Of a DNA stretch of 64,000 bases, positions 29,177 through 43,700 are shown in pieces (positions within the stretch are counted from its first letter, which is position 1; each line of letters opens with the position of its first letter). This stretch comes from Sminthopsis crassicaudata (Eukaryota), in contig NC_133618.1 in the NCBI RefSeq assembly GCF_048593235.1, positions 478,523,294 to 478,587,293 of the forward strand. The letters run 5' to 3'. Under the pieces are notes generated by a model. It was not told where the DNA came from. It searched no databases and worked only from the letters and a program-made list of their open reading frames with translations. The position numbers and the translations under genes were made by a program.

Positions 29177-29287
29177 TCACTCCTGCTCTTTGCTAGGTTT
29201 CTTATCACTCGGAGGTGGTGTGAGGAGTCCATTGGGAGCAGACACTCTCTCATCAGCCAACATGGCTTGTTTTTCATAAGCTTTGTC
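29177..29287 (-). CDS. CCNE1: CCNE1 last coding exon ([36 protein letters not shown])
   Basis: ttttag|GAC; TGA at 29179-29177; LLTPPxS Fbw7 phosphodegron. Confidence 0.96.
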   Translation of the reverse strand, partial: DKAYEKQAMLADERVSAPNGLLTPPPSDKKPSKEQE

Positions 29288-32200
29288 CTAAAACAAGATC
29301 AAAGGAGAGAAATGACACTGGTTAAAAAAAAAAAAGCAGGTTTTTTACATATTTATTTATTAATTTCTGAAGAGAACACATCTAATATTTCTTAAACCCT
29401 ACTACACTTTCAAAACTGTCCCTTATATTAAGGTATTTTAGCAAATCAACATTAATTTTGAGTAAAATAAATCTTAAATTCAGAAGTGATAATCTAGGGA
29501 CAAGGATATTAAAAGGGGGAAACGATCAGTTTCATATTGCTATAATAAGGTATATCTCAAATCAAATTCAGGATTTTTTTACCAACTGATTTCTTAAAAA
29601 TCTACCTTAGATGTATGAAAAAACTAACAAAAATATAAATTTATGAAATAAACTCACAAAAAAACAAAGTCATATAAAGTTTATCTAACACCTAGAAGTA
29701 GAATTTTCTTCAGTGATTTAAAAATATATAATTAAATGGGTGGGTGGGTGTCTTTCTGGGTTATTTATATGTAGTCTTGTCTGGGGTAAGGACTACATGG
29801 ACTGGGTAAGGTCACTTCTAGAATGATGTTCTATTTTGTCATCATTAAATCAAGTCATAAGAAAATATAAATGTTAATACTGACCAGCAAATTTATGGTG
29901 TTCACATGAGTCTGAATGTTATGCATGTCTTCACTAGGAACACCCTTAAAATATTTGAGTCTGGCTCCACCTACTTCCTTTACAGCCATAGCAAATGGGA
30001 CCATCCATTTCACACAATCCTCTACTTCTGGCCAATCAAATCCTGGAAAACAAAGTGAAAATTGCTTAAGCTAAAGCTTAAAATGTAGATATGTCAACTT
30101 TATACATGCTTCAAATTAAACTGAAATCCAACTTACCTGAAACTTTTTTCATTATCTCAGTGGAAGAGAAATGATATAAGGCAGATGCAGCTAGCACTCC
30201 ATAAGTAAAATCAAAGCAGCCCATATCCAGGATGCAGACATCTAAAAGCTATAGGAGGATGGGGAAAACATGATATAGAACAAGTCCATCAATCAATACC
30301 TCCATAAAATTAAGATAGATGAGCTGTCACACAAAATGGGATAAGTTATAGTGCTGGTACTTACCTCAGCAACCTGAACAAAGATTTGCTGAGGATACTG
30401 TGGCATAAGCACTTCTTCATACAGGTCATTGAGATAAGCAACCTGCATATATACATTTAGCCAGGACACAAGTGTCATCGGACTTAAACGCCATTTAAGG
30501 GCCTAGAGTAAAATGAAGGAGAAGGCAAATTTAGAGATCAACAGCTAAGCCAAAAATAATGGAGCACCCTGCCATGCAGTGGTAGATTGTCATACAAATA
30601 ATCAACCATTTTTGAGACTTAGAAGGTTATCACTTAATTTAAAGAGTATGATAATACAATTGAAGATGAATCAAATTCAAACAGGCAATTGCTTTCATCT
30701 TTGAAGAAATTCTAAATGAAGATTGAGCAGAAAATGTTTTATAAATCATTACTAACTTACCTTCATAATGATTAATTCCATGGTAAGAATTTCTTCCTCG
30801 GTACAAGCTCCATCGGTCACATAAGCAAACTGGTACAACTTTGGTGGATAGATTTCCTGAATGAAAAATAAATAAATAATGCCATCATGACCATCAAATC
30901 CAAACATAAATATTTTTATGTCATAATGTTTATCTAAACATGCTTTTGCTGAACCAGTTTTGACTGATGAAGATATAAAAACATAAACATTCTACTTTTG
31001 ACTTAAGAATCTTGAGTTCTAGCACCTTTAAATGGTTAATCCATAGCAATATAGTCATGGAAAAATATAAGAAACCACTAGTAGTCAAAATGCCTGTGAA
31101 ATCTGAAAGAAATTAATAAACTGTGCTTGCTGTCATATACTTTTAGAGCATTTTTTTTTTGGTCCCCTCAATGTTGTTAGCTTCACATTTAAAAGTTACC
31201 TAACTTTTAGCACAAGTTGCCAAGATTAAGGCTGTTTCTTCCATCTAAACCATATTCATAGTCCAAAAGTAAAGTACTTTCCATACCATAAAAATAAAAC
31301 AGTCTGTTTTCTAAACATTCTAAACATGAACAGATTTCCTATCCTTACTGAAACTAACATGTAATACTAATATAAAAACTTGAACAAGTTTTACCTCAAG
31401 TTTGGCAGCTATAAATAATGAGGTAATCCCAATAAGCTGCAAAAGTGTTTTTGTAATATTTCGCTGTGTTGCCATATATCGATCAAAGAAGTCTTGTGCC
31501 AAGTAATACGTCTCCCTGTGAAGTTTATAGACTTCAGACACCTGAAAAAATATTTAATAAGTTTTAGTACATTTACCTGAAAGAATGTTTTTCATGGGCT
31601 TTCAATGTTTTGCTTTTAGGCAAAACAGCAAAAACAAAAGTGCTGACAAGTTTACTTTTCTCCATTCTAACTTATAAGTATACTTATATAGAGAACTTGA
31701 GTCTTACTTAATATGGTCCAACTCTTCCAAATGTAGGTTTACGTAGGTGTAATGTTTATGTATAATATATATTTAATACTTAAGAGAATTAAAAACTTGT
31801 TTTCAAGAGAAACTCTCTTAAGAATTCTCATAAATTATTATCAATCTTTATAAATTTAATTTTAAAAATGTTATATGACTTGGGCATCACATACCTTATA
31901 GCACTAGATGGTTGAAATAGCAAAAAAGTTTAATAAACATTAATATACAGTCATTTAAAGACAGGCGCAAAGTCAAGCTTCAAAGGCATCACAGTATGGC
32001 AGAAATATTAATGGACCAAGAGGAAGACCTTGATCCTAGTCCCAGCTCTATCATTAAGTGAATATGTCTTTATTCTCATTTGTAAAACAGGTAAAACTAC
32101 CCAGCCTAATTGGTTGTTGTGAGAATCATAAGTTGTGAAGGTGCTTTGTAAATGACAAATTGCAATAAAAATGTAAGATATCACAAAAGCTAAAAAAAAA

Positions 32201-35200
32201 AAAACACTAAACACTGAATCTTTCTAGTAATAGGATATGCCAACATTAACATGTTAATGTTTGAAAATTTGTCTATGTTAGAATCTAAATTGTATGCGAG
32301 CAAAAGGTAGGCATATTTTTCAAGGGATAGGTAGAAAAGAATGATTGGAAGGGTAAGGAGACAGAAACTTAAGTAAACAAAATAAGTTTATGAAGATTCC
32401 TTAGCATACCAAAACCACTTCTAATGATTAGAGTTAACATCCCTCACTAGTATTCAAGTTCCACTTATATTTTGGAACAGAAGTAAAACCCAACTCTAAA
32501 AGTGAAACTCTTTTGTTGTTTCTAAGACAAATTTTCAGAAATCCTTTTCTAAGCCCCAAATTTGGTACTTGCCATTAATAGTGTAGGCACCCTTTACATA
32601 CACAAAAGTCACAGTTGTAATAAGTATTAGGTTTCTTAGCTTATCTGACTTTTAAACTGTTACTCAGTTTAACCCAGAAATAGCAGAATTTGGTAACAGA
32701 GTTAAGAGTTACAGGAGGCATAATTTTAAAAAATAATTTATCAAAAGTAATACATGATGAAGAACCTCTCATAAAAGATTGGATATGCCAGATAAGATGG
32801 ATTTACCTATAACAGTCACAAAATAGGGAACAACTTTACTTCATGTCTGATACTGATTTTAAACAATCAAAATGTTTGTTCCAGGGCCAAATTAGAAAAG
32901 AAAAACAGAATTACTTTGATTTCTATGTTTTGGAAATGAGAAAGGGAATGAATACTCCATGGATTAAAAAAAAAAACCAGAACACCAATTCAAAGAATTC
33001 TTTGTAAATGAGCATAATATGATCACGTACTTGTTTATACTATACTGTCACAGTTAATGAGAACAGTCAAACTCACCTCCATCATCCAATCCAGAAGGAT
33101 GGATCGCATTCTTGGCTGGAGAGAAGGATGTCTCTCCATAAAGTTCTTATCCCTCAGATATACCTGTTCTTTGCTTAACATGATTTTCCAAACTTCATCT
33201 CTATTTGCCCAGCTATAAAAAAAAATGAAACACTTATTAAAGTGCCTAAAAATTAGAAGGAAAGCTATAGTGAAAAGCTACAGATATATAAATGGATATG
33301 GCAGTTTAACTACTCACCCCAATAAGGGTAAGGGTGTAGCTCTATGTTGTGAAAAGTTGTGGGTTGGCATATTAGAATTAGGTAAGGATGGCTCATCCCA
33401 TCCTTTATCAGGTGTAAGAATCACTGACCATGGATTTCTGAGAAAAGCCTGTTGAAGAAAAACATTTTTTTAAGTGATGAATTACTCTAAATCACTCAGT
33501 ATAAAGGATATAAATGATTCTTTAAATCAGATAATATTTATTAATAAAAAAGAAATATTTACACACTACAGAAAAATATTGGTGTCATTGTCTTAATTAA
33601 AACAGAACCTTGCATTTTGTGGGATAAAGACAAGTCTGGATTAGGGATTTTTAACTCTTTTGGCAATCAGGTAAAGAGTATAGACTACTCAGTGTTTTGT
33701 TTTTTAATACATAAAATACACAGGATTACAAAATAAATTAGTTATACTGAAATATACTTATCAAAATATTAAAAAAATAAATTCATGAATCCAATTAAAT
33801 ATATTCAAAGACAGCAGATTAAGAACCCTTTGTCTAAATAAATGAAATTCATATAACCTCAAGTATTCATTTTGGCTATTAACTTTGTCTCTTTATCTAG
33901 CAAGCCCCTCCTATTTAAAATTTAATTTTTAGAAACATTCTTCACACCCTTTTGTGGCATTTTATAAAAGATCTCTTGGCTTCTATTACCTCATTTACTT
34001 AGACTTTATCTAAAGTTACAGACCAATCTACAATCAAATTAACAAAAAGAGATCAAGTAAATATATTCTACAACAAAATATTTGCTTTCAGCTGGCTGTG
34101 CGTACTAAAAAGTATAAAAATAAGATTTCCCAAACCAAACTGCTCTGGTAACTTTTGCGGTAGCAAATCTGAAATGAAATCCATCAGTTGCTGCACCTTT
34201 CAGATTCATGATAGAAGGAACTAGGCAACCTTTTCACATAGCTCCCTTAAATTGAAATTTTACTTTCTGTATCTGCTCTATCTTCATATGGTACTAAAAA
34301 GTACAAGAATACAACTTTAAAAAAATTTAACTCCCTTGAAAGAGAATCAAAATGCTTGACACATTTAAAAAATTTTTATACATTTTAAGAAAAACAAACA
34401 GTAACTCTAGGATTGTGAGAACTAAAATTTATGCCATCTATAAAAACCATAAAAACAGAAAATCAAAACATTTAAGACCACCTTTGCACACCAAATGTAT
34501 CCCAAATGTTATAGTGGTCTCAGTTGAAGTTTTGGAATATTTGATTTCTATTCAAATAGGAATGTTTTGACAAAGTTTGAGTTACATTAAGACTTATTTT
34601 AAGTTACCATATTTAATTTCTGGCTTTATAAACAATTTTAGACTCAATTTTAGGAACTCCTTATCCTCTTTTTTTTTTTTTTTTAAAGCAATGCAGCCAT
34701 CTTGCCGAAAATGTCAGCCAACTATGCCTCTATGGAAAACCCGCAGAAAAGTCTGAATTTATTTGCATTTCCACTATTTTAATAAGGAGGGAGCCTATTA
34801 AGTTTTAATACAAAAGACTGAAAAAATTGTAAATGAATGTAATCTAGCTTCTGGCTCAAAAGTAGTGTTGATTAGGCAATAATACGTAGTTCCTTATTTA
34901 ATACATTTTACATACTATGTATCATTCAGAGGTTACTTATGCATTTTTCAAGCTGCAAAAAAGTATCTCAGTTGAAAATAAGTCTTCTCCCTGCCTCCTC
35001 TAAAAATATAAGACTACTCTTCACCCAAGGCAGAAAGAGCTCTAGATATGCAAGATTTCCCCCTCAGAGTTCATGGGATAATTTGTGGGAGAAAGGGAGC
35101 TCCTACTAATTAGTCTATAACATGCTACTGATACCATCTCTATAATTCAACATGTTAAGAGTGCTTTAAGTTAATTTTACTCTTTCTATCAGTGGGCCAG

Positions 35201-38200
35201 GAATTTTGTTATGAGGGCACAATCAGTGTCATCTTCTCTGACTATGTGATTGGCAAAGCTAAGAATAGGTTTTTGTAGATAAGTTGCCAAACATCTTAAA
35301 ACTACAAGTCAGAGAATAGTTACAAGAGAGCTAACAATTGATAAGTTTTTTCCCAGAAGACACATCTTAGAAAAGAAATAGGTAAATCAGAACAACATTC
35401 TACTATTATGTTGAGTGTACCTTGAAGATGTACCTAGCTTTCAAAAACTAGCCCAAAGTAAAGAGAGTTATAGAGAAGAATGGTATAAACTAAAAGCTCA
35501 AGTTAATATAACAATGAAATAGAATGTTAGGGCTACAAATTTCCTGAAGCAACATGGTGGATATACTATATTTGTCTTAGAATTCCACAAAATTGCTACT
35601 AATATTTAGTAGGAGACTTGAAGATAAATATTATCCTAGGACTAAATATGGTGTTGATGAAGTAGTTATTCAAAACAACTTTACTAATGATTTTTAAAGA
35701 CAGTTTTCAGAAAACTGTCCATTGTTCTATTACATATGCACTTACTTCAGCAGATCAATGATTATTACATGTTTGACTGAATGACTTTATCCACAAACCA
35801 ACCAAACGATTTCTATTTCCAAATTTTGCCTTTACAAATTAACATTCCCCAAGTAAACTGATAAACTCAGATATCAATATGTTTAAAAAATAAATAGGAA
35901 ACTGTTCTGAGTATGTAGAAAATTTCAAGAAACCCTTAAAAATATCCATGAATGGAAATTAATAAGTAAATTCTATAATTGGAAAGTGTTATACAGAGGT
36001 AAACTATTATCATATTCTATTAATATATCAGAGACCAAGAGATCTGCTTGGTCTATTCCTCATTTAAGAACTGGAAACATTTTTAAGTATTTACATTTTA
36101 AAAATAAGCTTAATTAGCTCAGTATCCATTGTTGCTGTTCTCCCTAAGCAATGAAGTTGCGCATAGTAGATACTATGATTAGGTACTATGGTACTAAGAT
36201 TTGTGAGAGAAGAAAAAATAAATTTATTTTCTAATCAAAGTATATCTAATGCCATATTTTACATTTTTAAATAGGATTATAATACTTCCCATAACCCTCA
36301 TTATTGGGTTTGATTAAAAGATAGGCTTAGAGAGTATGAGAAGACATGAGAAAAAAGGAATAACTATTGCCTTTACTAAACTAAAAAAATTTTTTTCCTA
36401 TATAAGAGGAAGTCACCAATCTCACTCTTCAATGTTCAGTGAATCCTGCTTATGAAAGACTGAATGTGTCTTTTATATTCAACTATGACTACCATTTCAA
36501 ACAATGTTGCCCATCTGCTGTGAAGCACTTTACTCTTTAAGGTTCCAGCTGCTACCTCTGTTTATATATGTCTCATTGTTCATTATCCTATGAAATGATG
36601 TACTACCCAACCCCAAATTAGTCATTAGCATTTAACTCAGAATAAATAAAATATTCCTGCTTTTGTTTTTTATATGATGTTATAAGATATGACAGGGGGT
36701 AGGGTGGGGAGAATGAGAGATATTTTCTCTAAATCCAAACCATGACTATGATTTCCAGTCATTTCTGGAGGTAAAGATAGCATGGACTCTTTTCATAATG
36801 AGCATCAGCTATCACAATGTATAATTTTAGTGGCTTATCTTTAAGGGAAAGATAAGACAAATAGATTAGTCCACTGAAATTCTATAATGGAACGTACATT
36901 AATATTCGATATCTTCAATAGGTATATAAGTGAACTTATACCTGTTAAGGTCAGTTCAAATCCCAGCTGGTAGGGACACTTATTTAAATGTTAAATACAT
37001 ATAAAAATCACAGGCCAGAGACAGTGAGGCAGTCATCAAGATACAAATCAAGGCATTTTATTTAATGTTACCACGTGCTCTGTGCAGAAGGAATTCAAGA
37101 ATTTCCAAGAATTTCAGAGGTATAAAAGGACTTTCCAAATAGAATGAGATCTTCATTTAGAAGCTTATTCTTTCAGAAACCATCATTAATCCACTTAACT
37201 TGAGCTATTTGTTCTTCTTCAGAAGTTCACTAAGACATTTGGATCACATAAGAGCGCCTACACTGGAATAAGAATCTAGAGAGCTTGGCTTTAAGTCTGC
37301 CTGCCAGTAATTAGCTTTGTTACTCTATAGGCAAATCATTTTACCTCTCTAGGACTCAGTTTCCTTCCCAGTAAAAGGAAATGCTTAAAACAGATATTTG
37401 CAAGGATTTTTTCCAGGTATTATAGGACATCTAAAATCTAAGGGGAAGAGTGAGCAGTCTCAATTTAAGAGCTGGGAATACATAATTAGGCAAGGATTAC
37501 ATTTAATTCCACTGAGCGAGGAAGAATAAAAGAATATAGTAGAAGCATGATTATAGTAGCATGGAGAGAGTAAACTGGAGAGTTAAAAAATCATCTTTAT
37601 CAATACTGGAAAATAACAATGATCATACTTGTAGATTATGAATCTTACCGGTATCCTGACTGCAGTTCTTCCAATTGTTTCTCTTTTGGCCAAAACTTCA
37701 TCTGGGTCCAGCAAAAACTATATCCAAAAAACACATTCAAACAAGAGAGAGAATCTTAAACACAAAAACTGTGAGCATAAAGTTTGACCCAAAAAACTGT
37801 CTTTTCTAATCCAATCTTTTCCCCACAATACTAAGGATCCCTACAGTACTAGGATACTTGCAATCTATTTCAGGGAAGTAATTCCCCATATTTTACTTCT
37901 CTTGTACTCACCACAGCTACATCTGCCTTTCTTTTCCGGGATCGAGAGGATTCTGTTGAGCTGCTGCCACTTTGCTCATTTACCCTCTTCATGTTCTCTT
38001 CCTCTTTTCCATTCCCATCAGGGCTTCTTTCCCCCTTCCTTCCAGTACTGGGACTTTGATCATTCTTTCCGTCAAAGAGCTCACCAGCACTTGGATCTTG
38101 CCTGGCATCAGGATTGGGGTCTTCCCTGCCATCAGGTCTTGGATCTTCCCTGCCGTCAGGGGTTGGATTTTCCCTTGCATTTGGTCTTGGCTCATCCCTC

Positions 38201-39072
38201 CCATCAAAAAGTTCATGGAGACTTGGATCTTGCTCCCCACAGATAAGCTCATGAAAATTTGGATCTTCTTCCTCACAGATGAGATCAATAGGATTTGGGT
38301 CTTCTTCCTCACAAATAAAGTCATCCTCATCAGGGTGTGGGATTTCCTCCTCACAAATAAGATCATCAGGGTTTGGGCCTTGCTCCTCACAAATAAGATC
38401 ATCTGAGTTTGGGTCTTCTTCCTCACAAATAAGTTCATCTGCGTTGGGATATTCTTCGTCACAGATAAGCTCCTCAGGACTGGCATCTTCCTCGTCAATG
38501 GCATCTTCTTCATCACACATAAGCTCATCAAGGATGGGATCTTCCTCTTCACAGATCAGCTCATCGGCATGGGGATCTTCTTCCTCACAGACAAGCTCAT
38601 CTAAGCTCGAACCTTCCTCCTCACAGACAAGCTCATCTAAGCTCGAACCTTCCTCTTCACAAACAAGTTCGTTGGGGTTTGGATCTTCCTCTTCATAGAT
38701 AACTTCATCAAAGCTTGGATCATCGCCATAAACAAGCTCATCAATACTTGGATCTTCTTCCCCGTCAAAGAGCTCATCAGGGCTTGGCTCATGCGTACCG
38801 TTCATAAGCACATCGGGACTCCGCTCCTGTGTACCATTCATAAGCTCATCATGGCTTGGCTCTTCCTTTCCATTCACAAGTTCACCGGAGTTTGGTTCTT
38901 CCTTCTCATCAACATGATCTTCCTTCCCATCCTGGGCAAATTCCTCCTTCTCGTGGCATTCCTCAGAACCACTGCAAAAAATAAAACCAATGGGGATTAT
39001 TGGGAGGAGCTTTGCCCCTCAACCAACTTCTCTCTTTCCCTGCCACAGAGATACTCACCTTTCTCTGGACAT
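29177..39072 (-). CDS. CCNE1: Cyclin E1 (G1/S-specific), spliced CDS of 11 coding exons, 2172 nt / about 723 aa, with a roughly 316-aa acidic repeat insertion near the N-terminus
   Basis: Exons assembled by hand: 39059-39072, 37912-38971, 37649-37717, 33318-33448, 33077-33212, 31395-31541, 30761-30856, 30365-30502, 30137-30248, 29885-30042, 29177-29287. All introns are GT-AG and the joined frame is open. The peptide has the cyclin E hallmarks [22 protein letters not shown], the cyclin box ([21 protein letters not shown]) and the C-terminal LLTPPPS degron. Confidence 0.97.
29885..30042 (-). CDS. CCNE1: CCNE1 exon 11 ([19 protein letters not shown]...[13 protein letters not shown])
   Basis: 158 bp, ttttccag|GA...CTG|gtcagt. 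Confidence 0.97.
30137..30248 (-). CDS. CCNE1: CCNE1 exon 10 ([37 protein letters not shown])
   Basis: 112 bp, tag|CTT...CAG|gtaagt. Confidence 0.97.
30365..30502 (-). CDS. CCNE1: CCNE1 exon 9 ([46 protein letters not shown])
   Basis: 138 bp (one codon longer than human), tag|GCC...GAG|gtaagt. Confidence 0.98.
30761..30856 (-). CDS. CCNE1: CCNE1 exon 8 ([32 protein letters not shown])
   Basis: 96 bp, cag|GAA...AAG|gtaagt. Confidence 0.98.
31395..31541 (-). CDS. CCNE1: CCNE1 exon 7 ([23 protein letters not shown]...FIAAKLE)
   Basis: 147 bp, cag|GTG...GAG|gtaaaa; cyclin box core. Confidence 0.98.
33077..33212 (-). CDS. CCNE1: CCNE1 exon 6 ([45 protein letters not shown])
   Basis: 136 bp with canonical splice sites; start of the cyclin box. 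Confidence 0.97.
33318..33448 (-). CDS. CCNE1: CCNE1 exon 5 ([44 protein letters not shown])
   Basis: 131 bp, ttcttcaacag|GCT...GG|gtgagt; contains TPDK and TPLPLL, homologous to human TPDK and SPLPVL; phase fits exon 6. Confidence 0.9.
37649..37717 (-). CDS. CCNE1: CCNE1 exon 4 ([23 protein letters not shown])
   Basis: 69 bp, tag|TTT...CCG|gtaaga; matches human FLQDPDEEMAK exon in length and sequence. Confidence 0.93.
37912..38971 (-). CDS. CCNE1: CCNE1 exon 3, expanded to 1060 bp (acidic LxCxE repeat array, then NMKR...[14 protein letters not shown])
   Basis: Acceptor tttattttttgcag|T and donor GTG|gtgagt. Open frame for 353 codons ending in the conserved cyclin E NLS RSRKRK. Entry phase matches exon 2. 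Confidence 0.9.
38086..38202 (-). repeat. Coding 24-bp (8-aa) repeat, about 5 units, consensus GREDPRPD
   Basis: GRDEPRPN / ARENPTPD / GREDPRPD / GREDPNPD / ARQDPSA in the exon 3 translation. Confidence 0.85.
38200..38904 (-). repeat. Coding 36-bp (12-aa) minisatellite, about 19 units, consensus EEEDPNPDELIC
   Basis: Periodic gagcttatctgtgaggaagaagatcc motif. Units 38585-38620 and 38621-38656 are identical at 35 of 36 nt. Confidence 0.95.
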
Positions 39073-39102: not shown

Positions 39103-40180
39103 CTAGAGGGACAGAAAGAGGAAAGATTAAAAGGACTAAGTCTTTGCCGAATTGTAGCGATCTATCCTGCGGCCATCTAATTCCCAAGAGGCCACCTCCC
39201 ACCTAGTCCTTCCACCTTCTCTCCCAGGGCAGTGGCAGGGAAAGCCTTCCAAGCCTGGGGGGAGGCGGGGAGAAGGAATGGCAATTTGGAAAGAGAGAGG
39301 GGCTACGCATTCTCAACCCCAATCTCCAAGAGATAACCTACCCACCCATTGCAATGAGACTTTCTAACCTCCCGCTCAGCCCTCTGAGAACAGCGGTCCA
39401 CGCGGTACGCTAATCTTTCAAACTCAAGTGCAACCAGGACTACCAGACTTGCTTCTGTGGGTTTATGTGCAAAGTTAGGGAACTGGGGTGGTATGGGGCA
39501 AAGTCCCTCCACCCTGTCCCCTCTTGGCACATCTCCACACAAACCATCAGGCACGAGAAAAAAAAGCAACCTAGTGGTAGTAGCTGCGGTGCGGCGGTGG
39601 AGGCGGCGGCGGCGGTTCATACGGATAATTCTGGGGTCCGCACTATCCCGATTCCCCTGCTCTCGAATCTCACTCACCTACTCAACCTCCCCCTTACCTC
39701 CGCCGTTGCACTGGCAGGCGGCCACACACCGGGAATCCAGGTGGCAGAAGCAATGACCGAGCAAGGCAGGAGTCTTGCCAGGGGTAGCCTTGCCAACCTG
39801 CCGGATGACAGGCGGCTAGTACCGCGGACCTGGGTCAAGTCTGCTAGCGAGCTGACCGTGCACTCCTCTGCCTCTACCTCCCTAGCCCATCTGAGCCTAT
39901 CTCCCGCCTGCTCACTGCCCGCTCTGGGGCTGGCTGGCTCCAGCTTGCTGGCTGGCTGGCTGGGCTGGCCTGCCCGCCCTCAGGGGCGGCGTTTGCGGCT
40001 CCCACTCCCCGCCCTCCTTCACCGATCTCCCGCCTCCACATGCAGCTCCTCCCGCCAAGCCACACCGTGCGGAGTGTGGCCCTTGCCGGCTCCGCCGACT
40101 GGTCTTGACCGGTGGCGGCTGAAGGACGCAGAGCTCCATCTCTGGCACCAGCCGCTGTCATTGCGCTGGAAGGATGAGGA

Positions 40181-40278
40181 TGCGAGGACCCGGCTGCAAG
40201 GACCCGGCTGCGAGGACCCGGCTGCAAGATAGGCTGCAGGGTCTTGGCTGCAGGGACTTGGCCGCAGGGATTTGGCTG
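40181..40278. repeat. 14-bp GC-rich minisatellite in the CpG island (gaggacccggctgc x3, then ggctgcagggactt-like x3)
   Basis: Seen directly in the sequence. Confidence 0.85.
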
Positions 40279-40424
40279 ACTCCGCACTGTGAAGACTTGG
40301 CTGCTGGCACTTGGCTGTTATCAGAACTCCGTGGTGGAACTCCGTAGCTGTGGCGCCGGGATACCCACCACACCACCTCCCTCCTCCTCCCGCCCTCTTT
40401 TGGGAACCCCAGGTGCATCCTTAC

Positions 40425-40770
40425 CCGCAGCGGGCGGCGGCTGGTGGCAGAAGCGGCAGCGGGCACAGGCGGTGGAGGCTGTGGCAGAGGAGCTGGAGGA
40501 GGCGGTGGGGGTGGCGGTGGAGGCAGAGGTTGAGGAGGTGGAGGTGGTGGCGGCGGCAGAGGCGGCGGGGGCTGCTGGTGAATGCCCGCAGGCGGCAGCT
40601 GGCGATCGGGGTTGGCCGAGGGAGGCAGGGTGAAGAGGAGGAGAGGCAAAGGCCGGAGGCGAAGAAGTAGGAGGCCGAAGGAGGCGAAGCTCGGAGCTCC
40701 TGGGCAGCTCTGGTGGGATGTGCAGGGCGCAGCTACCTTCCTTTATACCCTGACTGCCCGCGCCCCCCTC
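40425..40770 (-). other. Putative non-coding exon 1 of CCNE1
   Basis: Runs from the CERM-like TSS to a donor CGG|gtaagg at 40424. Other donors exist (39697, 41536), so the exon cannot be fixed without RNA data. Confidence 0.4.
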
Positions 40771-40771
40771 C

Positions 40772-40789
40772 AGCGGGACATTAAAAAAA
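40772..40789 (-). promoter_or_regulatory. CERM-like element (AT-rich tract plus variant E2F site, TTTTTTTAATGTCCCGCT) at the likely TSS
   Basis: Closely resembles the TTTTAAATGTCCCGCT cyclin E repressor module of the mouse/human cyclin E promoter. Confidence 0.75.
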
Positions 40790-43700
40790 TATCTAAGGCG
40801 CGCAGTGGCCCCCCCACCCCACCCCCTCATTTCTCCCCCTCCTCTCCTTACTTCCCCACCCCCACTCCCTACCCTCCTCCCCCTACCCCCACCCCAGGTC
40901 TGGCCAGTCCCGGCCTCAGTGCTTGGGCCGGACCAGGGCCAGCTCTCTCTGCCTGGGCGTCGAACTCTGGAGGTAGGGGGCACGGGGCCAGCAGCTCCGG
41001 ATGGGAGGCTGCACCGCCCCCCCACCCCCTTCAACGTGCAGGGAGCATGCGCATTAAAGTGCAGCTGCCTAAGTGGGGGGGGGGGCCTCCTGGAGCTCTG
41101 GGAGAGGCGAAGGGAGGGGGGGGTGCTTGCAACTCTAGGGCCCGGGGAAGGGAGGCGGGGCTGGCCCAAGCACTGAGCTGAAGGAGCTGCAAAAAAACAG
41201 CGTGGTCGGCTCCAAATCCGTGTAAACAAGGGAGCGATTGTATAGCCGTTTTGGAGGGGGGGGAATGAGTATGGGGCCCCCAGACTTCAGTCTTGGTTCC
41301 AGCCTCAGAATTGGGGAACGGTATGGGATGAACTTAGAAAGTGGAGTGGAAGGGAGGCGTTACTGTTCTCTGGTGCCGTCGCGGTCGTAGTTGAGCTTGG
41401 TGTCTTTCTCCACGGTGTGTGGCGGGAGGGAGTCTTAGCCTCTTTTCTTGAGTTTTGAGACCGTGCCGCTAGTCCCACCTCTCCCACTTCTCCCCTTTTT
41501 GGGGATATATCTAACGCAGGATAACACCAAACTTACCTGGCTCTGCAGAAACTTGTGTGATTTTCCATTCTTCTGCCTCTCATTCATGCGCAACCACTGA
41601 TTCCAAGTCTTGGGACACCTTTCCAACCCAGGTCGAGCTTTCTAGCTCTTGAGACCTCTTCGCACTTACGGGCTGTTGCAGCCATTCTGGCCCCTGGTTT
41701 TATGCACCTTAGTACTTAGCTGTACATGGGTCTTGCATTGATATCAGACATGACTGTGAATTGGGGTTCTTCCAAAGGAACCTTCCAAAAGACTGTAAAC
41801 TGAAATATGATGTTCCTGGGCCCCTCAACAAAATGCCACAGCCATATTTTCTGAACCAAAATTGGGAGTGGGGGAAAGTTTTATCTGACAAAGAATGTTT
41901 CTTTGGGAAAGCATCCTTGGTTGAAATATACTTTCTTTTCTTAAAATGAAACTCTGAAAAATACAGAGTTTAGAATCTCTACTCCCAAACCCAACTCTAG
42001 GAGGTGTAGTAGATACTTGATTATATTTGTGGGATGAATGAGTGAATGAATAAAGACATAGCTGTTTCGTGGGAAGAGAATGGATTTGGAGTCAGAGGTC
42101 CTGTATTCATTATCAAGCTCTGCTGCTTACCGCTAGTGTGACTTTTGGCAAATTAGTTTCTTTATCTATCGATCACAGGTTGGACTCTCCATAGATGAAG
42201 ATCTAACTGACATTTAGTGCTTCTTCAAATGAATAAGGATGACAGGATGTTATGAATAAATGGATAATGATAGAGGGCTTCTGCCAATTAATGAATAAAG
42301 ATGATGGTCTCCATGGTGCCTGGTGTGAGAGGGATTGCAAACTGATTACTAGGCTCCAGGTGTGCTTGGGGAAAGAGAGGCAGGGAGAAACCTGAGTAAG
42401 TTGATCATGCAGTTTAATTGTACTGAGTTAAAGGAATAGGCTTTTAACCCAAATCTTTCTCTTATTGACTCTGATTTGTGAGGCAACTCCCTTAATCTCT
42501 TTGGGTCTCAGTTCCCATTCTGTAAAATGAAAATTAAATGGAATTAGATTAGACCTGCCAACAAAAAACACCTTCCAACTCAACAGTCAGTGATTTTTTT
42601 TAAGTTCATGAGGCAAAATTTAATTAAACAAACATTTATTTATTTATTTTTGAGTACTCACCATATACAAATCTCTACTAGGGAAATCCAAGATAAAATA
42701 TGTCCACTGGCCTCAAAAAGCTTACAGTTTAGTGCTCATTTAGGAAAACTAAATCTTCCTTAATCCCTTGGTTTTCTGTTTTCCTGATCCTTTCCTAGAC
42801 CATTTTTACTGAAGTTTAGGGAATAACAAAATAGGGATTTGGAGGGAATGATACTGGTTTAGATTAGAGGAACAAGATTAGACACAAACATGGGAAATGG
42901 GAGAAGACAAGCGCCAAATTTGAAGAGAGCCATGCACATTTCATCATCTGGGGTAGGGACCTTTCTGCCTTTGGAGGGGGATCTCCCTGGGAAAGAGACA
43001 GCCTTCTCAGAGCACACTACACCTAATCCTCCCTTACAGATATACAAATTATAGTTCCTCTTGGGAGATATGGACATAATGAGGCAAGGCAAGCATTTTG
43101 AGGGTTTGTTTTCTCTCTGATAGTCCGTGAAGTTTGGGCAGCTGTGTGCACAACTGGACTTTGCTGTCACTGAGGCAGCCTCTGTCTGTTTGCAGTTGGT
43201 ATTGATTACACTCCAAGGAAGTGAGCTCTCCTTTATCCTTGGAGCTCAGTTTTCAGTTTAGGGATTATCTGGACCCAGGGCTTTGCCTTCCTGCCAGACA
43301 TTTGGATGTTTCTAGGCTCCCTTGTTAGTATCTCAACTCCTGTTTGTCAAAGAATGAATTGACCATTTGTTAACTGGTTTTGAGGAGTAGGGATAGTAGC
43401 AAAGCAGAGTGAAATTGTTGTCTGAGTCAGAACTGGGTAACCTGTATCACAGTTTGCTGTGAGTTCAACCAGAGACAACTTCTGAAGATTACCTGTCCAT
43501 TCCAATTACATCTCTTCTACCTTTCAAAACTAAGTCCAAGTGATTGGACTGATGAAACCAGTCTTGAAAGTTTCAGAACTATCCCTTAGGCAAAAATATG
43601 AAGTAATGGAAATCATCTTTAGCATCTGTACTTGGAACCACCTACCACAGACTTGAATTCTTGTACCCCTCCCAAATCTGAGGGTAGACCTCACTTTATC

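Follow-up and report, generated by a model that had tools for sequence, protein, structure and literature searches.

The viral oncoproteins human papillomavirus (HPV) E7, adenovirus E1A and polyomavirus large T carry a Leu-x-Cys-x-Glu (LxCxE) core that is followed by an acidic stretch and lies in a disordered region. D-type cyclins carry an N-terminal LxCxE motif that binds the LxCxE cleft of Rb (10.1101/397448). The stretch analysed here (hereafter the window) comprises 64,000 nucleotides of the fat-tailed dunnart, Sminthopsis crassicaudata (contig NC_133618.1, positions 478,523,294 to 478,587,293 of the forward strand), and contains the CCNE1 locus, in which one minus-strand exon of cyclin E1 encodes a tandem array of units of the 12-amino-acid (aa) type. 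The G1/S switch has cyclin E1 and Rb at its core and is thought to be wired alike in all mammals. The array is best explained as an N-terminal, probably disordered and very acidic insertion of 12-aa units that arose on the marsupial stem and that we propose to be a multivalent docking array for pocket proteins, a reading to which we assign a probability of about 0.6. An initial annotation of the window had taken the array as a record of the stepwise emergence of LxCxE from a unit without the motif, still turning over today.

The dunnart cyclin E1 protein P0033 (723 aa) matched the array exon and the next exon at 100% identity, the array exon accounting for residues 5-358. P0033 was used in place of a protein spliced from the window exons, and tblastn mapped it onto the downstream exons as well. 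The open reading frames (ORFs) of the downstream minus-strand exons generated Cyclin_N and Cyclin_C matches in Pfam, and human cyclin E1 was the best PDB match of every downstream ORF piece (E values of 1e-23, 6e-19 and 4e-14). A Pfam scan of the array-exon product alone matched no family. The coding exons are as follows.

39059..39072, minus strand: coding part of the start-codon exon, with the ATG at 39072-39070 (M-S-R-E-S), four and two-thirds codons, and a GT donor just past 39059.
37912..38971, minus strand: array exon, 353 stop-free codons, flanked by an AG acceptor (before 38971) and a GT donor (after 37912).
37649..37717, minus strand: following coding exon (F-L-L-D-P-D-E...), from spliced contigs and a tblastn match at 100%.
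29180..33448, minus strand: other exons of cyclin E1, which encode the cyclin box folds and the C-terminus (stop near 29180), a range with inexact borders based on Pfam, PDB matches and tblastn.

RNA contigs from runs X12 and X16, which come from different studies, joined 39059 to 38971, skipping 87 bp, joined 37912 to 37717 and then continued into the next exon. Both joints were GT..AG on the minus strand, and the DNA run contained neither of them. Therefore, the whole array exon is kept in the mature mRNA, and the array is coding, transcribed and spliced in frame within cyclin E1 mRNA.

The in-frame parse of the array exon resolved twenty units of the 12-aa type on the minus strand. The exon product opens with a 29-aa acidic head located ahead of unit A1, and the segments that follow are, in gene order, these.

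38671..38883, minus strand: outer units A1-A6 (ELVNG, ELMNG, VLMNG, ELFDG, ELVYG of 11 aa, and EVIYE), without Cys and with Asn, Asp or Tyr at the Cys position.
38599..38670, minus strand: block B, two units of the ELVCEEEG[A/S]SLD type, B1 and B2 (in-frame parse).
38215..38598, minus strand: units C1-C10, ten Cys units, among them C3 of 18 aa, C7 of 14 aa, C8 with FxCxE and C10 with ELICG.
38083..38214, minus strand: unit D1, ELFDG followed by four 8-aa (24-bp) G-R-E-D-P-x-P-D units (period 24 in Tandem Repeats Finder).
38047..38082, minus strand: unit D2, the final ELFDG (in-frame parse).
37912..38046, minus strand: exon tail with an internal Met and the conserved basic element, the only part shared with non-marsupial cyclin E1.

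The Cys units read, in gene order, ELVCE three times, ELICE, ELMCD, ELICD, ELICE, DLICE, DLICE, DFICE, DLICE and ELICG; the ELMCD unit reaches 18 aa through a 6-aa insert, and the second of the two consecutive DLICE units followed by DFICE has 14 aa. A strict LxCxE was present in 11 of the 12 Cys units; in 20,000 shuffles that preserved the composition, such motifs averaged 0.17 and never exceeded 3. Asp and Glu make up 38% of the array, which has a net charge of -97. In the AlphaFold2 (AF2) model, which was poor overall (mean predicted local distance difference test score (pLDDT) of 40, from a 16-row alignment), residues 1-427 had a pLDDT of 26-39 and no secondary structure.

The initial description of the array was borne out in full by this parse. 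The unit types it had listed, with Asn or Asp at the edges, Tyr in between and Cys in the centre, were all present on the minus strand, and the array extended past the 3′ limit given to it, down to about 38047. The key-position codons were AAT/AAC, GAC/GAT, TAT and TGT, and the proposed path AAT/GAT, TAT, TGT by single-base steps is available. The unit lengths of 33, 36, 42 and 54 bp were each a multiple of 3, in agreement with the claim that all length variants preserve the frame. The adjacent pair 38585-38620 and 38621-38656 was indeed identical at 35 of 36 positions. The exclusive use of TGT for Cys was considered as a sign of a single origin and rejected, as TGC before G would make a CpG and TGT would be mutationally favoured anyway.

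A search of 1.84 billion representatives returned wombat cyclin E1 as the sole true relative (E value of 1e-151); no other LxCxE array was found among these representatives, the remaining matches (P0002-P0023) being unrelated periodic proteins. Array-bearing cyclin E1 proteins, all of 712-747 aa, were found in ten more marsupials, namely devil, Antechinus, Dromiciops, wombat, koala, tammar wallaby, brushtail possum, sugar glider (Petaurus), Gracilinanus and Monodelphis. The array is thereby common, unit for unit, to 11 marsupial species from four orders, with two didelphids and Dromiciops included. The cyclin E1 proteins of echidna, platypus, kangaroo rat and two snakes (395-418 aa) had neither the array nor an N-terminal LxCxE, with just 12-31 residues ahead of the basic element, and the full-length human cyclin E1 chain in PDB has 410 residues. 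The columns of the basic element (R348-V356), which lies ahead of F-L-x-D-P-D-E, were invariant in marsupials, monotremes, a rodent and snakes.

The presence of the array in didelphids and australidelphians and its absence from the outgroups argue that the insertion is a marsupial character already present before these two groups split, some 70-80 million years ago. Judged from the proteins compared, the array is about as old as the living marsupials and nearly frozen. The comparison of opossum, wallaby, koala and dasyurids, which the initial annotation had put forward as a check, yielded one orthologous series. This unit-for-unit sharing in 11 marsupials, together with the absence of array indels in four sequencing runs (see below), contradicts an array-wide ongoing turnover.

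The same rule-based unit parse was used for all species, as MAFFT slipped by one unit in possum and Gracilinanus; codon-level tests were performed between dunnart and devil, and the other species were compared as proteins. Units A1-A6 were present in 11 of 11 species, and their position 4 (N, N, N, D, Y, Y) was invariant. Units C1-C10 corresponded one to one across marsupials, except that C6 was missing in wombat and possum, and D1 and D2 were conserved in all marsupials. Small in-frame indels were found across species in A5, C2, C3, C6 and C7. Each dunnart unit was closest to the devil unit in the same position, with 86-100% DNA identity, while paralogous units were only 42-83% identical (15-30 of 36 nt), B1 and B2 alone reaching 33 of 36. 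As every unit is closest to its positional devil orthologue, concerted evolution or homogenisation does not act outside block B; the units are not kept alike by ongoing exchange, in contrast to what is expected of a hypervariable minisatellite. Single Cys residues have been lost in two lineages, Cys to Tyr in koala unit C9 (DLIYE, protein P0043) and Cys to Ser in sugar glider unit C8 (DFISE, protein P0037). Therefore, single motifs are dispensable or redundant, and Tyr can derive from Cys.

Dunnart and devil were 94.7-95.3% identical in introns and 97.0% identical in the array. The ratio of non-synonymous (dN) to synonymous (dS) divergence of the array was 0.24 (12 synonymous and 13 non-synonymous differences). 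The outer units A1-A6 had 6 synonymous and 0 non-synonymous differences, and the 10 non-synonymous differences in the Cys units all lay outside unit positions 2-6. Four indels separated the dunnart and devil exons, all of them multiples of 3 (36, 6, 15 and 12). Parsimony changes across the 11 species at positions 1-12 of units C1-C10 numbered 6, 2, 1, 2, 4, 0, 4, 8, 0, 13, 7 and 9. L, C and E together had 4 changes at 30 sites compared with 41 at 40 sites in five spacer positions (binomial P = 1.2e-4). The initial annotation had named equal conservation of motif and spacer positions as a finding that would refute it, and the opposite was observed. Pro9 was as invariant as the motif residues. 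The outer units had 12 changes at 72 sites, compared with 56 at 108 in the Cys units. These patterns indicate purifying selection on the array, which acts most strongly on the outer units and, within the Cys units, on L, C, E and P. Being the most conserved, with a dN of 0 against devil, the outer and Tyr units are neither decaying relics nor passive fossils, nor are they states in transition now, and they must have some role of their own.

Pocket-protein binding by the array is putative and is proposed from motif and conservation. The context expected of LxCxE, expressed as an ELM-type regular expression ([LI]-x-C-x-E, acidic, Ser or Thr flanks, and a hydrophobic residue or Pro 2-5 residues past Glu), was found at 11 of 11 cores in the window and at all 10-12 cores in each of five other marsupials scanned. 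The conservation profile fits the LxCxE rule as well, with L, C and E fixed, position 3 hydrophobic and variable, and position 5 free (E, D, Q or G). The 10-12 copies may thus offer RB1, p107 and p130 a multivalent docking array that engages their LxCxE cleft. Such an array would let cyclin E1-CDK2 hold Rb in the manner of cyclin D or E7, the avidity of many copies offsetting the weak binding of each; the effective affinity for the three pocket proteins would rise, or other LxCxE clients would face competition for the cleft. A separate role would fall to the outer ELxNG, ELFDG and ELVYG units.

Several points weigh against this reading. The motif-less units are more conserved than the motif units, and therefore the LxCxE motifs cannot be the whole function. 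The residue at +3 past the motif is Pro and not the classical hydrophobic residue, and the loss of single Cys units in koala C9 and Petaurus C8 points to redundancy and shows that Tyr can descend from Cys. Support for the tree of the units is weak (a bootstrap value of 48%, from 36 nt), the AF2 model is poor, and contig-level reads cannot resolve the copy number of block B. A single contact with the LxCxE cleft is also weak: without it, the phosphorylation of Rb by cyclin D kinases falls only about 1.7-fold (10.1101/397448).

This weakness of single-motif docking also favours the explanation that the Leu-x-Cys-x-Glu pattern is unrelated to pocket proteins and marks an acidic, Cys-bearing disordered region with another role. 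Such a region may sense metals or redox state with its 12 regularly spaced cysteines, bind histones or further basic proteins, or govern the stability or localisation of cyclin E1. The extreme acidity of the array, the invariance of Pro9 and the strong conservation of the non-motif units fit such a role. So does a change in the second cyclin fold, where marsupials replaced a V/I-x-C-L-E site with M-G-C-F-D, so that their Rb contacts may simply differ. The match of the conservation profile to the LxCxE rule is close, however, all cores lie in the ELM-type context, and the host protein is the subunit of a kinase whose best-known substrate is Rb. We therefore consider a role apart from pocket proteins unlikely and retain the docking array as the preferred explanation.

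The second-fold site itself (window 30210-30224, minus strand) reads M-G-C-F-D in the window and in the five marsupial cyclin E1 proteins checked, V-D-C-L-E in human and [IV]-G-C-L-E in monotremes. Kelly and colleagues are said to have proposed in 1998 that a VxCxE site is an Rb-targeting element of cyclin E. Any connection of the change at this site with the origin of the N-terminal array is speculative.

How the motif-bearing units arose is a separate question. The Asn/Asp, Tyr and Cys states were all already fixed in the marsupial crown ancestor according to the 11-species comparison, and the array is absent in the outgroups; therefore, the order of events is not observable and cannot be proven from living species. 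The direction given in the initial annotation, from Asn or Asp through Tyr to Cys, has a little better than an even chance of being correct. It is favoured by the occurrence of ELFDG with Gly5 on both flanks (A4, D1 and D2), and by the combination of Gly5 with a basic residue (Lys or Arg) at position 6 that is common to the outer units and the 8-aa units. On the 5′ side, motif-like states rise monotonically inward (N-G-K, N-G-T, N-G-T, D-G-E, Y-G-D, Y-E-E, C-E-E), and on the other side they run from the centre outward as C-E-E, C-G-E and D-G-R. The neighbour-joining unit tree, midpoint-rooted and with the low bootstrap value given above, grouped EVIYE with the Cys units, whereas ELVYG fell among the units that lack Cys. 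Growth from inside, with older variants left at the edges, is usual for tandem arrays. Most likely, this array grew in the same way before the marsupial radiation, and its edges would represent the older unit type.

The opposite polarity, in which LxCxE units came first and the outer units with Asn, Asp or Tyr and Gly are derived, having lost the motif early and gained a constrained role, draws on the single-step Cys losses seen in koala C9 and Petaurus C8, on the lack of an outgroup that polarises the states and on the weak, midpoint-rooted tree. It would require three identical changes (Phe3, Asp4, Gly5) to occur independently at each end to produce ELFDG on both flanks, and the Gly5 and basic position 6 common to outer and 8-aa units, as well as the usual growth of tandem arrays from inside, also speak against it; we regard it as improbable. 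A fuller history, in which an Rb-binding LxCxE was born de novo in an acidic ELFDG-type repeat on the marsupial stem (Asp/Asn changing to Cys by way of Tyr, and Gly changing to Glu), was amplified to 10-13 copies and was frozen by selection, making cyclin E1-CDK2 a multivalent pocket-protein binder, is possible but rather doubtful when all of its parts are taken together. If true, a whole mutational series would be kept side by side in one exon, and the G1/S switch would have been rewired across a lineage.

Copy number varied among marsupials only in block B (1-4 units), to which lineage-specific additions of units were confined, all unit types being present in every marsupial. Block B also accounts for almost all of the length change in the array, every instance of which preserves the frame.

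Block B units: dunnart (window) 2, devil 3, Antechinus 3, Dromiciops 2, wombat 1, koala 2.
Block B units: wallaby 1, possum 4, sugar glider 1, Gracilinanus 3, Monodelphis 3.

These numbers need at least 5 changes on the species tree; devil, for instance, has one extra 36-bp unit relative to dunnart. Both dunnart B units carry Ser (TCG), while all three devil units carry Ala and those of Antechinus read Ala-Ser-Ala. The 5′ halves of B1 and B2 retain synonymous differences that are also found in devil. As these differences are shared with devil, yet Ser is shared by both dunnart units, the B units are old, and unequal exchange or gene conversion reshaped the block after the dunnart lineage split. 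The following segment was read as the trace of such an event.

38582..38655: 74-bp stretch of perfect 36-bp periodicity (38582-38619 identical to 38618-38655), attributed to exchange or conversion in the dunnart lineage.

Zero differences over 38 bp are expected 14-31% of the time even at the dunnart-devil divergence, and the perfect periodicity alone is weak evidence of recency. The recent duplication proposed in the initial annotation thus holds in so far as block B was rearranged in the dunnart lineage, while the units themselves are old. Likewise, its view that the array is still turning over applies to the copy number of block B among species and fails for the rest of the array, which consists of stable, one-to-one orthologues.

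Polymorphism was investigated in four runs from four studies, one from DNA and three RNA-derived, at contig level and all at least 99% alike. No array indel was found in the four runs, in which contigs broke at the perfect repeat so that the block B copy number was unreadable. The copy-number polymorphism suggested initially is not supported by this shallow, contig-level sample, in which block B collapses. Frameshift alleles, the common occurrence of which the initial annotation had named as evidence that would count against it, were looked for in the same four runs, a shallow test, and none was seen. Four single-nucleotide polymorphisms (SNPs) were detected in the array, synonymous at 38233, 38443 and 38818 and non-synonymous at 38382.

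38382: SNP G>C (plus strand), Gln to Glu at spacer position 7 of unit C6.

Three of the four runs carry the Glu allele, which is the devil state, and the window carries the rarer Gln. The two devil assemblies were identical over 11,059 bp and are therefore uninformative on polymorphism. The depth of the 38-bp repeat unitig (38618-38655) relative to its flanks was about 1.6x in X12, 2.1x in X16, 2.7x in X18 and 2.6x in X7, differences that may be noise or copy-number alleles of block B; as an estimate of copy number this depth was rejected, being too noisy for short unitigs and coming in three cases from RNA-derived contigs.

A literal version of the initial annotation, in which a young and expanding coding minisatellite has just given rise to LxCxE, its outer and Tyr units remain as passive fossils and alleles of different copy number exist throughout the array, can point to the states graded from edge to centre with their single-base codon path, the perfect 74-bp stretch, the interspecific differences in block B and unitig depths of 1.6x-2.7x that could hide copy-number alleles, but it is very improbable, being largely refuted by unit-for-unit orthology in 11 species, didelphids included, and opposed by the lack of homogenisation, the invariance of the outer and Tyr units at the key position with a dN of 0 against devil, the absence of array indels in four runs and the 14-31% expectation of zero differences in 38 bp at dunnart-devil age. 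The description of the array as a young, unstable minisatellite should therefore be dropped, and block B (38599-38670) is the only segment worth genotyping.

Three further observations concern the surroundings of the array. An RNA contig of run X16 departed from the window at 39103 with 12 unmatched letters, which suggests an extra non-coding 5′ exon upstream of 39103, probably in the GC-rich region 39300-42000 (GC 0.52-0.59). Long ORFs cross the array on the plus strand and in other frames (e.g., a 139-aa Ser-rich one; 38279-38698, plus strand); they are by-products of the stop-free repeat, with no evidence of genes. In devil, the CCNE1 locus lies inside a called gene on the opposite strand, the product of which matches Pfam C19orf12. 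We take C19orf12 to be a neighbour of CCNE1 in human, in which case synteny would support the orthology.

A full-text literature search found no description of the array, and NCBI and UniProt carry the proteins as plain cyclin E1. A whole mammalian infraclass has 10-12 conserved copies, on cyclin E1, of the motif with which cyclin D and tumour viruses grip Rb, which suggests a different docking logic in marsupials. For the evolution of motifs, the array is a clear natural example in which a short linear motif was multiplied within a probably disordered region and then held through the marsupial radiation, with possible precursor states preserved beside the amplified motif.

Among known systems, the D-type cyclins of animals and plants are likewise cyclins with LxCxE in a flexible N-terminal region before the cyclin box; they have one copy, whereas marsupial cyclin E1 has 10-12 tandem copies in an acidic insertion of about 330 aa. 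The units of the array fit the same motif context as the viral LxCxE oncoproteins. Those proteins differ in having one motif each and in not forming part of a kinase, and they work by displacing E2F or by directing Rb to degradation; we know of no tandem LxCxE array in them. Human cyclin E1 (PDB 1W98 and 9NYQ) is about 90% identical or more in the cyclin box exons and has the same R-S-R-K-R-K-A basic element, in a chain of 410 residues compared with 712-747 in marsupials. Hypervariable coding minisatellites (variable number tandem repeats) likewise have a 36-bp head-to-tail period in frame; unlike them, the units of this array are 42-83% alike and not homogenised, and no length variants were seen in the contigs of four runs. 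Involucrin-type coding repeats combine ordered unit types with lineage-specific additions at one site and frame-preserving changes only. Compared with these, most of the cyclin E1 array stopped growing before the marsupial radiation, and block B alone resembles the 'modern' segment of involucrin.

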